A DNA stretch of 32,879 nucleotides from Octopus bimaculoides (GCF_001194135.2 NC_068988.1:58942142-58975020), one strand, 5' to 3'. Positions 5,933-32,746 are shown, numbered from the stretch's first letter. Translations and numbers: made by a program. Notes: generated by a model not told the origin, from the sequence alone.

Positions 5933-6029
5933 TCATAATTCGACTTTAGGCTGTGGGTTCATGCTGGCACCTTGGGGACACTGAAACGCCTTTGAAAACA
6001 ATTCAGAATTCTGTAATAGTTTATGAACC
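5933..6029 (-). CDS. M13 neprilysin-like paralog B, terminal exon (9 of 9 in window)
   Basis: Acceptor cttctcgtttgcAG, phase 2. (R)VHKLLQNSELFSKAFQCPQGASMNPQPKVEL*, with TGA at 5935-5933. Confidence 0.93.
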
Positions 6030-6149
6030 CTGCAAACGAGAAGTTAAAAAAATATTAATTTGTCAAGGCTAAAATAAAGTATGTGTATATGAGATTATGT
6101 TACATTGAACATTTAAATGAAAACCTTACGCAGTTTAACTAAAAACAAA

Positions 6150-6450
6150 TGACATCCGATTATTTCCTTCCTTTTAAAAGGACATTCATAAACCTAAGAT
6201 TTTCAAAATAGAAAGTCCGGAAGAGTGTTCAAAAGGTTTCTCTGCAGTGAATTCAGCCTAGTGGACGGAGGGCTCACACGGCAGTATAAAAGAAATAATT
6301 TTTTTTGTATTGAAAATTAAGTAGGACACTTTCAACAGATAATAATAAGTTTTTGAAAGCCTGATATATTCTTTTGTAGTCTCATACCATATTATAAATA
6401 TCTATTTTGCAATAAAATAGTTACTGCAGAGTGACGCTTTGAACACCCTG
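6150..6450 (+). mobile_element. Tc1/mariner 3' end remnant with terminal inverted repeat
   Basis: Ends ...GAACACCCTG|TA (reverse complement TA|CAGGGTGTTC, a mariner-type TIR with TA target). Upstream RVFKRF...DGGLTRQY resembles a transposase C-terminus. Confidence 0.5.
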
Positions 6451-6455
6451 TATAT

Positions 6456-7355
6456 NNNNNNNNNNNNNNNNNNNNNNNNNNNNNNNNNNNNNNNNNNNNN
6501 NNNNNNNNNNNNNNNNNNNNNNNNNNNNNNNNNNNNNNNNNNNNNNNNNNNNNNNNNNNNNNNNNNNNNNNNNNNNNNNNNNNNNNNNNNNNNNNNNNNN
6601 NNNNNNNNNNNNNNNNNNNNNNNNNNNNNNNNNNNNNNNNNNNNNNNNNNNNNNNNNNNNNNNNNNNNNNNNNNNNNNNNNNNNNNNNNNNNNNNNNNNN
6701 NNNNNNNNNNNNNNNNNNNNNNNNNNNNNNNNNNNNNNNNNNNNNNNNNNNNNNNNNNNNNNNNNNNNNNNNNNNNNNNNNNNNNNNNNNNNNNNNNNNN
6801 NNNNNNNNNNNNNNNNNNNNNNNNNNNNNNNNNNNNNNNNNNNNNNNNNNNNNNNNNNNNNNNNNNNNNNNNNNNNNNNNNNNNNNNNNNNNNNNNNNNN
6901 NNNNNNNNNNNNNNNNNNNNNNNNNNNNNNNNNNNNNNNNNNNNNNNNNNNNNNNNNNNNNNNNNNNNNNNNNNNNNNNNNNNNNNNNNNNNNNNNNNNN
7001 NNNNNNNNNNNNNNNNNNNNNNNNNNNNNNNNNNNNNNNNNNNNNNNNNNNNNNNNNNNNNNNNNNNNNNNNNNNNNNNNNNNNNNNNNNNNNNNNNNNN
7101 NNNNNNNNNNNNNNNNNNNNNNNNNNNNNNNNNNNNNNNNNNNNNNNNNNNNNNNNNNNNNNNNNNNNNNNNNNNNNNNNNNNNNNNNNNNNNNNNNNNN
7201 NNNNNNNNNNNNNNNNNNNNNNNNNNNNNNNNNNNNNNNNNNNNNNNNNNNNNNNNNNNNNNNNNNNNNNNNNNNNNNNNNNNNNNNNNNNNNNNNNNNN
7301 NNNNNNNNNNNNNNNNNNNNNNNNNNNNNNNNNNNNNNNNNNNNNNNNNNNNNNN
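6456..7355. other. Assembly gap (900 N)
   Basis: Run of N flanked by (TA)n. Confidence 1.
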
Positions 7356-7852
7356 ATATATATATATATATATATATATATATATATATATATATATACT
7401 TGTAAATTTGGATTTTATCCCTAATATTATTAGCATTATATATATATATATATGGATACAAAGGCCATAAAAAACCATTGCTTCGGATCGATGCGAGCAA
7501 AAGGGTAGAGTGGAGTGAAAGCTTTTGAAGAAACTGGGATTTAAAGAAAAATTTCACCTTCAACGAGAAAGTGAATCTCAACAACTTTGTTGTGTGCACA
7601 ATAAGCGACAGGCCTGTCTTTCTTTTGCTGGGCGGAAATCCCATTTTCGGACCTATGTAATAGAAAAATCTCCACTAACTACTCTACTTATATATCTGTG
7701 GAGACCTATCAATGCCATATATGACCTTAGGTCTGCAACTGTAACAGGGGCTCAAAAGGCATTTTACAGTCCACAAAGATCAGAACTGAACTGCTGCTCT
7801 TGGTGGTCCAAAACAACTCTGTAATTTATGTGGGTGTCTTTTCAGATCATTG

Positions 7853-7946
7853 TCTATCTATCTATCTATCTATCTATCTATCTATCTATCTATCTATCTA
7901 TCTATCTATCTATCTATCTATCTATCTATCTATATATATATATATA
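7853..7946. repeat. (TCTA)n then (TA)n microsatellite
   Basis: Direct repeats. Confidence 0.95.
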
Positions 7947-8249
7947 TTGATGTAGCAAAACTGATTCACAAAATCTGTATTTTTTAAGACGTAGTAAAAA
8001 ATCTGAAAATAGCCTATATTAGTGTAGTTTTTCTACTCTTATTGCTATAAAGGCATTACAGAGGTTAAAATCGAAAAAACTGTATATTTAGTCAATAGTG
8101 AGAGAGAAATTTTCTACGTTTAGCGGTGTCAACTTTAAGGTTGTACCCTGTGAAATTTATAGTTTAGTATCTGTGGTCCGTGTCTGTATAACTGTAATTT
8201 ATTGTGGTTTGTAGATGAAAAGCGGCTGCCAAAATCCTAAATCAGTTAC

Positions 8250-8323
8250 CTTGCTGTATTTGGGGCAAATGTTCTGTGGTCTGCATAATTATGGGTATTA
8301 GTTTCTTCACTTGAACAAAATAT
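8250..8323 (-). CDS. M13 paralog B exon 8 of 9 (His711-equivalent exon)
   Basis: ttttctgcAG|...|GTaact, 74 nt, phase 0 to 2. IFCSSEETNTHNYADHRTFAPNTA(R) vs neprilysin [26 protein letters not shown]. Confidence 0.88.
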
Positions 8324-29889: not shown

Positions 29890-30013
29890 CTTAAAATACA
29901 AAATATAACAGAAACACATATGACGAGAAAATACAAATGATATAGAGAATGGGCAAAATGTCAATTGTACGATTGGTTAATAAATGTCTCGTGATTGGAT
30001 TCGTGTGTTTTTA

Positions 30014-30095
30014 CACATGCACCGCATGCGCACACACTCACACATACAAACATGCACGCAGGACGCACACACTCACACACACACACACATGCATA
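30014..30095. repeat. Imperfect (CA)-rich microsatellite
   Basis: Direct repeats. Confidence 0.85.
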
Positions 30096-30744
30096 TATTC
30101 CCAGTGCTAATTTCTTTGTTGAGAAAACGCCAGCAATACACTCAACTACTTTTGCTCTATAAACACACGGGGACATGAAGGAAAAAAATTTTATTCTTCA
30201 AATAAGCTGTGAGATTCGGGATTGAAAATTGAGTGGGATCTATCTTCAAATTATTTTAGTTAATTTTATTCACTCAACACAATACTCCCATTTCAAGCTT
30301 TCATATATCGTAACATAATGAGAGTTATTCATAAAGCAATGCCTGTGGATGAGTTATCTAATACAATATTCCAGCGATATGTTTTTATTAATAAGTACAT
30401 GAACAACCGCTGGAATAATATTTACAAGAACATATTCTAACCTACATAAACATCAAGTACATTCTACTTTTGTTACTTTCAATATCTACACAGTTCAAAT
30501 ATATTAACAGGAAAGTTTTGTCAATACCGGCGAATTTAGAGATCTTTGATTATGTCTTATTTTAATTGATAAACCAAATATAACTACCCAAGTCTATTAT
30601 GTTCACTGTAATTTTAAATCAGTGAAAGTTTCGGAAGCCTCTCCTCTTAAACTACTGAATATAAAGGATGCTTATTCCTAGCAATGTAGGTGCTTTTAAC
30701 ACCCTAGTCACAATTATATGTATGTATATACATGTATACATGTA

Positions 30745-30868
30745 AATATATATATATATATATATATATGTGTGTGTGTGTGTGTGTGTGTGTGTGTGTG
30801 TGTGTGTGTGTGTGTGTGTGTGTGTGTGTGTGTGTGTGTGTGTGTGTGTGTGTGTGTGTGTGTGTGTG
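30745..30868. repeat. (TA)n then long (TG)n microsatellite
   Basis: Direct repeats. Confidence 0.97.
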
Positions 30869-31299
30869 GATAAATCTAATAAGTAACAAGGATGCCGTTT
30901 CAGGCGGCTCCATTTAATCGAACAATGCAAGAATTACGTCAATTTAAAATACAGCGCGATCCTCAGTGGCAAAATATGGATTTTCAACAGACTGAATATC
31001 CTAATATAATTTTCTGCTAATATTTCATCAAAGCTAGACAGTGAAAGAATTCTATGTTGCCAAGAAAAAGAGGTAGGGTAGGGGTGACATAAACTCGTTT
31101 CTTTTTTCCAGTTAAAGGGACCTACACTAGGAAACATAGAACGCTACAATGAGGTCCTAACACACATTAAGGACACAGAACTTCTGTCTGTTTAGTTTGT
31201 GACACTAATAAAGGAGTTGTAACCATTATAATATTTATCAATAAAGTAATGGCAATTATATAATGCAGTTCATTTAAATTGTTAATTTAGTCATTCTTA

Positions 31300-32480
31300 A
31301 ATGTAATGATAGTAATGGGAAAATTAAGTTATTAAAGTATTCATGTTGCATCAAGAGTGAATAATTCTTTATAAACGATGCTTTTCTTTTGTTTTATATC
31401 GGAGTATATACGCAAAGACATTTGCTTTTGGTCTCCACACGAAAAGCAGAAATGGAAGATTCGGTTTCAACGTGAATGAAGGTAAAAAAAGTAGCTATAT
31501 CATCCAGACGAATAGCTTCACGGAACGCAGGTGGCTATGCGGTGGCATTGTAAAACCCACAGTTCAAATAGAACACACATTGTCACGGTTTTTTTTTGGT
31601 TTTACATTTGAATAGGCCGTATGGACTATTGTTTAAATCTGAACAAGGGGATACTACCCCCAACAGATTTAAATTTACTACGCCTGTATGTGTGTATTTT
31701 ATAAGAGAAAACGTAATAATTGAAATAGAAAAATATCGATGCCATACACGTTAGGTTATTGAATTTATTATGTTGCATTAAGAGTGAATATTTACAAACT
31801 ATTATTTTTGCTTTATTTCGGGGTGCATAAGCAAAAAGATTTGCTTTTGCTCCCAAACACGCTGCTCCTACATGAAGTTGGCCTCGTGAAAAGTATGGCT
31901 TTTGAAGTTGCAACGTAGCGACTTTTAGTGTTGGCCTTGAGTTTTAATACAGCTCATGGCAAAAGAAAGTGGGATAGGAAACTATAACCGCTTAAATTGT
32001 AATGAGACAGTAGATGGTATAACTGTTATGCGAGGAATGAAATCGGTGTCACATTTACCCCAACCAGTAAGAATATTTGCCTCAATGCAGTTCCTCATAA
32101 GTCTGTGCACAGTTAGTGTTGTACCATTGCATATTTTTTTCGTGATAAATTACTAAGCTCCCACAGGTGATACTCCTACATAAAATTGACCATGTGAAAA
32201 GCAATGTTTATCAAGTGGCAATCCAGCAAGTTTTAGTGTTTGACCCTAAGTTTTTTTATGGAAAAATAAATTGAGATAGGAAACTGTAACCTCTTAAACG
32301 GCAATGGAAGCTTAGATGGTATGTCGAATATGCGAGGAATGAAGACGGTGTCACATTTACCACAACCAGTAAGAATATTTGCCCCATAAGTTTGTGCACA
32401 ATAAGTTTTGTACAGTTATATAATTTTTGTTGAGACAAATTTGGCAATAGCAAAGCAACTTATCCGAGGAAGCTTAACAA
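31300..32480 (-). mobile_element. Helitron (PIF1-like) helicase C-terminal remnants, partly repeated
   Basis: LLLPNLSQQKLYNCTKLIVHKL, GKCDTVFIPRI, FKRLQFP, SFAMS..QGQ, KPYFSRGQLHVGAACLG. Similar blocks at about 32230-32480, 31755-32150 and 31300-31470. Confidence 0.8.
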
Positions 32481-32654
32481 ATGCAACAATTATTAATACG
32501 ATATACTTAATGTATTTCTTTCATTAAACATTATATATGTATGTGTTTATGTGTGTGGCTGTAAGTACGTGAGTGTTGATGTAAAGAATTATCTAAATCA
32601 AAAGCATACGCAACTGAAATTAGTTATACCAACAAAATAAGCAACATAACCTAC

Positions 32655-32746
32655 TTTTCATCGTGAAGCATCCTCATGTTCAGCAAGTTTGAGTAAAATT
32701 TGTTCAAGCTAAAGATGTCTGAGACAAAATTGTCAGTGAAATTTAG
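32655..32746 (-). CDS. M13 paralog B exon 1 of 9 in window (gene continues beyond window end)
   Basis: tctttatttttcAG|...|GTaggt, 92 nt, phase 0 to 2. LNFTDNFVSDIFSLNKFYSNLLNMRMLHDE(K) vs LNYKEDEYFENIIQNLKF. Confidence 0.82.

Follow-up and report, generated by a model that had tools for sequence, protein, structure and literature searches.

The window analyzed here is a stretch of 32,879 nucleotides (nt) from Octopus bimaculoides (GCF_001194135.2 NC_068988.1:58942142-58975020). Its minus strand carries the last nine exons of a gene related to the M13 (neprilysin/ECE-1) family of zinc peptidases, in which the zinc ligands of the family have been replaced. The gene is termed the window gene below, and orthologs of it are present in O. 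sinensis and O. vulgaris. Its exons are listed in the order of transcription. Residue numbers are those of neprilysin, by way of an alignment to solved ECE-1 and neprilysin chains.

32746-32655, minus strand: first visible exon (exon 1), 92 nt, encodes LNFTDNFVSDIFSLNKFYSNLLNMRMLHDEK, with which the M13 N-terminal region ends
29889-29831, minus strand: exon 2, 59 nt, LPAY where the substrate-binding motif NAFY is expected
23682-23631, minus strand: exon 3, 52 nt, encodes VPLASLQLPLFTKDEY; 49 of 52 nt are the same in O. sinensis
20796-20729, minus strand: exon 4, 68 nt, encodes GGLGFLIGREIFREFE, with REIFR at the former zinc motif HExxH
19801-19683, minus strand: exon 5, 119 nt, WM for the family-conserved WW, and Tyr for Cys620
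14548-14483, minus strand: exon 6, 66 nt, encodes VNGAKTANNIIADVFGLNVASQ; the third zinc ligand E646 is Asn, D650 is retained
9293-9195, minus strand: exon 7, 99 nt, a divergence hot spot in which 27 of 99 nt are unlike O. sinensis
8323-8250, minus strand: exon 8, 74 nt, IFCSS with Cys694 retained, and FAP for HSP (H711F)
6029-5933, minus strand: exon 9, 97 nt including the TGA stop; R717, LQNS and Cys734 are retained, and the tail reads KVEL-stop

The exon chain was obtained from a six-frame motif scan, in which REIFR, GG.G..IG, NG..T and LQNS were all located on the minus strand, from a search for AG...GT intervals of the lengths given in an earlier note on this DNA (with the phase left open), and from direct reading; a single sensible chain resulted. 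The earlier note had described nine GT-AG exons of the lengths listed above, splicing into 241 codons and a stop. That description proved exact, and the strand, which had not been given, is minus. The spliced exons total 726 nt (241 codons plus TGA) with zero frameshifts. Each of the nine acceptors is AG preceded by a pyrimidine tract, and the eight donors have GT, usually in a GTAAGT-like context. Exon 1 has both an AG acceptor and a GT donor, the same splice sites as in the O. sinensis ortholog, with which it shares 84 of 92 nt; exon 9 matches the same ortholog at 93 of 97 nt. Exon 8 is one codon shorter than in the orthologs and in the M13 family. The sequence ATTAAA is present at position 5798, 134 nt 3′ of exon 9.

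The window ends 133 nt upstream of exon 1, and about the C-terminal one-third of an M13 protein is visible. Because exon 1 encodes the end of the M13 N-terminal region, further upstream exons are required beyond the window. The gene had been called intact in the earlier note, and this goes too far: about 500 N-terminal residues lie beyond the window, and the models of the orthologs are 5′-truncated or skip exons.

The Pfam profile check recommended with the original description was carried out. The product matches PF01431 (Peptidase_M13) with an E-value of 2.5e-32 and 112.6 bits (cut-off 24.5), and the match is unbroken, with residues 43–240 aligned to profile positions 4–204 of 205. End-to-end alignments to solved chains gave E-values of 1.6e-21 for ECE-1 and 1.4e-17 for neprilysin. 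The product is a genuine M13 homolog, far beyond chance. The C-terminal domain can be aligned end to end with human neprilysin (MME) and ECE-1 (1dmt, 6sh1, 3dwb) at about 24%–30% identity. Unlike the window protein, these enzymes have the zinc ligands, H711, N542 and a C-terminal Cys-x-x-Trp.

The fold was examined with an AlphaFold2 model of the O. sinensis ortholog, built on an alignment of 59 homologs. The model has a mean predicted local distance difference test (pLDDT) score of 78.2 and a predicted template modeling (pTM) score of 0.78, and all of its significant PDB matches are M13 proteins: neprilysin (TM 0.71), ECE-1 (0.74), PepO, Zmp1 and Haemonchus H-gal-GP. The ortholog also shows a partial match to Peptidase_M13_N (PF05649; 44.6 bits, profile positions 253–378 of 381). 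A two-domain alpha-helical M13 fold is thus predicted by the model to persist. The structure prediction that had been proposed thereby supports retention of the fold, as seen in the O. sinensis ortholog rather than in the window protein itself.

All three zinc ligands are replaced in the window protein: H583R and H587R (REIFR for HExxH) and E646N. The region of the third ligand reads NNIIAD instead of ENIAD, with D650 retained. The NAFY motif has become LPAY (N542L, A543P) in the window gene and in both orthologs. The transition-state histidine is lost in all three species (H711F) and R717 is retained. Further changes are D590E, R747E and W693F. E584, D650 and R717 have been retained by the window gene and by both orthologs, and Cys694 and Cys734 are kept in the window gene. 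Every residue change that had been listed from the sequence, together with the retention of E584, D650 and R717, is borne out by the ECE-1/neprilysin alignment.

The C-terminal tail ends in P-K-V-E-L-stop where the family has CxxW. The cysteine of CxxW is lost throughout the octopod clade described below, and the tryptophan in the lineage of the window gene only, as the paralogs keep it. The Cys620/Cys746 disulfide pair is lost as well, also in the active octopod paralogs, and its absence is a feature of the clade.

Inactive M13 homologs have been recognized by the lack of at least one of the motifs HExxH, ENIAD, NAxY and CxxW (PMC8223033); in the window protein all four are defective. Since the zinc ligands are lost, and since every ligand is required according to the neprilysin mutagenesis cited in PMC7822871, the protein, judged by its residues, cannot be active as a zinc peptidase.

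The only close matches in a collection of 5.8 billion protein sequences are the O. sinensis ortholog (XP_036361323.1/XP_036361324.1, 384 amino acids (aa), 71% identity) and the O. vulgaris ortholog (CAI9726476.1, 400 aa, 67% identity). Both have been named automatically “membrane metallo-endopeptidase-like 1”. This name implies an active enzyme of the MMEL1 type, which the sequence contradicts. Both orthologs display CEIFR (Cys rather than Arg at position 583), LPAY, FAP and the KVEL tail. An in-frame deletion has removed 18 nt from exon 6 in both, and their exon 8 is longer by one codon. At the O. sinensis locus (L001) and the O. vulgaris locus (L002) each of the nine exons is present and intact, as is each of the 17 splice dinucleotides, with the same synteny; no stop codon, frameshift or lost splice site was found in the nine exons of any of the three species. 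As both orthologs carry the dead site, its origin predates the split from the O. sinensis/O. vulgaris lineage.

A HMMER search with the O. sinensis ortholog yielded 1936 M13 relatives. An HExxH-type motif is dominant among 150 representatives of this library, and a few unrelated representatives are without it, e.g. a wasp protein with KEIYD. Inactive M13 homologs are known to be scattered (PMC2259306). The nearest full-length relative is XP_036361321.1 of O. sinensis, a 763-aa protein encoded on the same chromosome as the ortholog, with 36% identity; it is apparently an active type II membrane M13 enzyme with the motif HEILH. This protein, the O. bimaculoides neprilysin XP_052826014.1 and a protein of Argonauta hians (P0042) are active octopod paralogs that fall in the same clade as the window gene. 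They resemble it in exon content, in fold and in the loss of the Cys620–Cys746 pair. The tail signature of the clade is K-(I/V)-x-I-W, of which the paralogs keep the terminal Trp and the window gene does not. The paralogs also keep HExxH, ENIAD, NAxY and H711, whereas the window gene has lost them all.

At the O. vulgaris locus, upstream of the ortholog, unannotated M13_N-like exons are present at L002 positions 23228-23308 and 24517-24630 (plus strand). One of these is 70% identical to XP_036361321.1, compared with 36% in the C-terminal domain. This would mean that conservation is much stronger in the N-terminal half, or else that the exons are part of a different copy of the gene.

The reading frame, the splice sites and the residues conserved in the family have survived far better than neutral decay predicts. 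In simulation, a stop-free frame survives 84 random substitutions, the number by which the exons differ from O. sinensis, with a probability of 0.02–0.05. At the intron rate, 726 nt should have acquired about nine indels, and two are seen (18 nt and 3 nt), both in frame. The probability of no frameshift is 0.0015, or about 0.04 with the intron indel rate halved; 12 of 42 intron indels are multiples of three, and the intron rate depends on the alignment. None of the 34 splice-site nucleotides has changed, for which P is about 0.015 given 11.7% divergence. Within the protein, the sites that differ from O. sinensis make up 18% of the most conserved third of the family columns, 35% of the middle third and 47% of the variable third (Mann-Whitney p = 0.0005). 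The corresponding nonsynonymous distances (dN) are 0.082, 0.178 and 0.164, as compared with an intron distance of 0.127.

Exon 7 stands apart. It differs from O. sinensis at 27 of 99 nt, as against about 12% in the adjoining intron (about 88% identical; binomial P = 2e-5). Gene conversion was considered as the cause. No paralogous donor was found among the library representatives, which are at most 41% like either version of the exon, and this explanation was set aside, although clustering of the library at 50% could hide a paralog.

The nine exons are probably the end of a real, still-coding and fast-evolving M13 pseudo-peptidase that belongs to an octopod-specific clade and is of the same kind as the Drosophila Nepl proteins. 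Such an M13 shell would keep its fold and be unable to bind the catalytic zinc, and any action it has would proceed without cleavage. By analogy with the Drosophila proteins, it would most likely act extracellularly or in a lumen, as a binder or scaffold. The dead site arose before this species split from the O. sinensis/O. vulgaris lineage. Selection appears to have preserved the frame, the splice sites and the residues of the fold core after that, with the remainder changing at the neutral rate or slightly above it. On the simplest interpretation, the core is weakly constrained and the rest of the surface is free or changing adaptively.

A number of observations weigh against a maintained protein. 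Those on substitution rates come first, with the ratio of dN to the synonymous distance (dN/dS, or omega) resting on one informative species pair, the window gene and O. sinensis. The exons differ at 84 of 708 aligned sites (11.9%) and the intron flanks at 11.7%. By the method of Nei and Gojobori (NG86) dN is 0.140 and dS 0.093, giving an omega of 1.5 (bootstrap 0.83–3.3). A pairwise codon model fitted by maximum likelihood (ML) gives an omega of 1.57, not different from 1 (twice the log-likelihood difference, 2dlnL, = 1.8); values of 0.5 (2dlnL = 13.3) and 0.7 (2dlnL = 6.3) are rejected. Differences at codon positions 1, 2 and 3 number 37, 27 and 20, fewest at the third, and all six exon differences between O. 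sinensis and O. vulgaris are nonsynonymous. Other points concern the gene itself. The six-codon deletion in the orthologs removes the NG..T motif and the surroundings of the former ligand E646. The annotated orthologs are the short 5′-truncated or exon-skipping models of 384 and 400 aa, with no recognizable membrane anchor. The collection of 5.8 billion proteins, in which O. bimaculoides RefSeq proteins are represented, has no annotated protein of the window gene, or of the second M13 gene in the window, from its own species and no transcript-derived protein of the window gene. The neighboring M13 gene, described below, looks like a remnant, so that the cluster probably includes decaying copies. 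Lastly, A543P should disturb canonical docking of the substrate strand, which would weaken any simple model of peptide sequestration in the old active site.

Most of these observations are what would be expected of a decaying duplicate, i.e. an unprocessed pseudogene, transcribed or silent, in the M13 tandem cluster, which would have lost its function with the death of its active site and whose nine exons happen to be still free of lesions. The loss of nearly all catalytic motifs and of several structural ones, including the CxxW tail, fits this explanation too, and it has an appreciable, if minor, chance of being correct. The retention of coding features speaks against it: the absence of a stop codon (about 0.03), the absence of a frameshift (0.0015–0.04) and the unchanged splice-site nucleotides (about 0.015) have a joint probability of at most about 2e-5 under neutrality. 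In addition, the family-conserved positions are depleted of substitutions, and exon 7 has changed faster than its introns, which is unexpected under neutral decay. The same excess in exon 7 suggests a further explanation, an adaptively evolving secreted protein (of saliva or venom, reproduction or immunity) that diversifies its surface, notably in exon 7, on an M13 scaffold. The point estimate of omega is above 1, dN at sites outside the core is 1.3–1.4 times the intron rate, the excess is limited to exon 7 itself, and the polarized changes are symmetric between the two lineages (18 and 19). M13 transcripts occur in octopus salivary and digestive glands generally, a finding that is not tied to the window gene (PMC12607849). 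This explanation is improbable as it stands: the excess of omega over 1 is not significant, secretion and expression of the protein are postulated, its N-terminus being beyond the window, and exon 7 could still owe its divergence to the kind of conversion discussed above. It is very improbable indeed that the protein is still an enzyme or a metal binder with another chemistry or ligand set. In its favor are E584, D650 and R717, common to all three species, and the Cys at position 583 of the orthologs. Against it, none of the canonical ligands remains and H711 has been replaced, position 583 varies between Arg and Cys, the site of the third ligand has been deleted or displaced in the orthologs, and the neprilysin mutagenesis cited in PMC7822871 shows every ligand to be required.

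Returning to a still-coding pseudo-peptidase as the preferred explanation, a bolder form of it is offered tentatively and is rather unlikely to hold in full. It would be an octopod-specific M13 shell without catalytic machinery whose coding capacity is maintained and whose surface evolves adaptively (omega > 1) with a focus in exon 7, a binder of separate evolutionary origin from the insect Nepl proteins, recruited to some fast-moving interaction, e.g. with prey or in venom, in reproduction or in immunity.

The claims of the earlier note on function fare unevenly. It had proposed a non-catalytic M13 protein under selection. The dead site in the orthologs and the retained frame, splice sites and core agree with this, and the average omega of about 1.5 does not. 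A dN/dS near 1 had been named there as the sign of a recent pseudogene, and this is what is observed, with the ML omega of 1.57 and exons diverging at 11.9% to the introns' 11.7%. The suggestion that two arginines replace the charge of the metal is not sustained, as position 583 is Cys in both orthologs and the helix of the third ligand has a six-residue deletion in them. Peptide sequestration by a dead M13 protein with His-to-Arg ligands is not a new idea, having appeared in print for Drosophila Nepl15 (PMC7822871).

The frame of the window gene has been kept over about 12% neutral divergence while its amino acids changed at the neutral rate or faster. An independently evolved cephalopod case of this type would offer a useful natural experiment on the capacities of an M13 shell that lacks zinc. 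Unless the gene proves to be expressed and a binding partner comes to light, the practical consequences are modest.

Inactive members of protease families form a recognized, poorly understood class, and among M13 proteins such cases have been catalogued mainly in Drosophila and nematodes. To our knowledge one inactive M13 protein, Nepl15, has been the subject of a functional study. A literature search for inactive M13 proteins in cephalopods found no paper. Dead M13 proteins are already known in flies, and the window gene adds an octopod case.

Drosophila has 21 catalytically inactive, mostly secreted Nepl genes (PMC8223033). Like the window gene, these encode M13 homologs that are missing at least one of HExxH, ENIAD, NAxY and CxxW, and they arose by lineage-specific tandem expansions, as did the cluster of the window gene. 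The likeness to Nepl15 is closest. In that protein zinc ligands have been changed to Arg, non-catalytic peptide sequestration has been proposed, and the knockout has a phenotype (PMC7822871). Both Nepl15 and the window gene have two ligands replaced by Arg and have lost the transition-state His. They differ in that Glu584 is retained in the window gene and is Gln in Nepl15. The window gene also differs from the Nepl group in its independent origin, as it lies in an octopod-specific clade with an active octopus paralog as its nearest relative at 36% identity, and its average omega of about 1.5 is unusually high. Expression, secretion and a phenotype have been shown for fly Nepl genes, whereas the window gene is known from sequence alone.

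A second M13 gene is situated in the window in convergent orientation, about 4 kb from the stop codon of the first. One exon of it is visible and its earlier exons are outside the window:

1701-1808, plus strand: last exon of the second M13 gene, encodes (R)VQIPLQNSKDFSEAFGCQKDSKMNPQRKSKLWDN-stop (hidden Markov model (HMM) E-value 7e-13)

The orthologs of this second gene are annotated as a 113-aa model in O. sinensis and an 84-aa model in O. vulgaris (P0162), both of which skip the whole catalytic core. A search with a 58-aa query, composed of the O. sinensis penultimate exon and the last exon in the window, returned the 84-aa O. vulgaris model only. The second gene may be a remnant.

Two runs of N interrupt the window:

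24314-25036, no strand: assembly gap within intron 2; about 313 nt at the corresponding place in O. sinensis
6456-7355, no strand: assembly gap within intron 8

Neither run touches an exon, and the Pfam and PDB alignments have no lost residues at the junctions of exons 2 and 3 or of exons 8 and 9. Intron 2 aligns collinearly with both orthologous loci on either side of its gap. Intron 8 is collinear with the orthologs at both ends; its length is 16 kb in O. sinensis and 12 kb in O. vulgaris, as against an apparent, gap-containing 2.2 kb in the window. Nothing in the O. sinensis or O. vulgaris introns corresponds to 7356-8185, the segment that separates exon 8 from the gap. The order of exon 8, exon 9 and the convergent M13 neighbor is alike in all three genomes, and for this reason mis-scaffolding is unlikely. 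Both gaps adjoin (AT)n or (TA)n runs, which are probably their cause, and segment 7356-8185 itself contains (AT)n and (TCTA)n arrays.

Two further M13-like stretches were rejected. The peptide LQKPYFSRGQ at 31878-31907, found by tblastn with a neprilysin C-terminus as the query, is in the wrong exon order and has no splice sites, and is attributed to chance. On the minus strand of intron 8, positions 7448-7510 encode LYPFARIDPKQWFFMAFVSIY (tblastn E-value 3.4, HMM E-value 4.3). This segment is in the wrong order for an equivalent of exon 7 and has no O. sinensis counterpart, and is either a chance match or a dead remnant.

The introns had been described as filled with transposons, and interspersed repeats matching several places in the orthologous loci are indeed present. 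Short repeats at 25040-25229 (at the edge of the gap in intron 2) and about 19383-19620 (downstream of exon 5) show 77%–84% identity to several other sites at the O. sinensis and O. vulgaris loci. In intron 2, a 235-aa open reading frame at 26229-26936 (minus strand) gives a weak match to Pfam RVT_1 (E-value = 2.9e-6, 27.6 bits, cut-off 29.6), and by this sequence resemblance is probably a retrotransposon fragment. Since the segment around it, 25262-27746, can be aligned at about 81% with this intron in both O. sinensis and O. vulgaris, the insertion predates the species split. In intron 3, a 144-aa open reading frame with an ATG start at 21634-22068 (minus strand) has no Pfam match. Its C-terminal part (…YSIPCSCGRLYKSETYRPIKIRVDQYRK…) may correspond to the GIY-YIG nuclease motif of Penelope-like elements, for which the Pfam scan was negative.

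The window is AT-rich (about 33% G+C) and dense in microsatellites, with (CA)n, (AT)n, (TCTA)n, (ATA)n, (AAG)n and (TG)50 arrays. Examples are found at the following positions:

2406-2491: microsatellite
3850-3940: microsatellite
7853-7945: microsatellite
13393-13551: microsatellite
30769-30868: microsatellite
32831-32879: microsatellite

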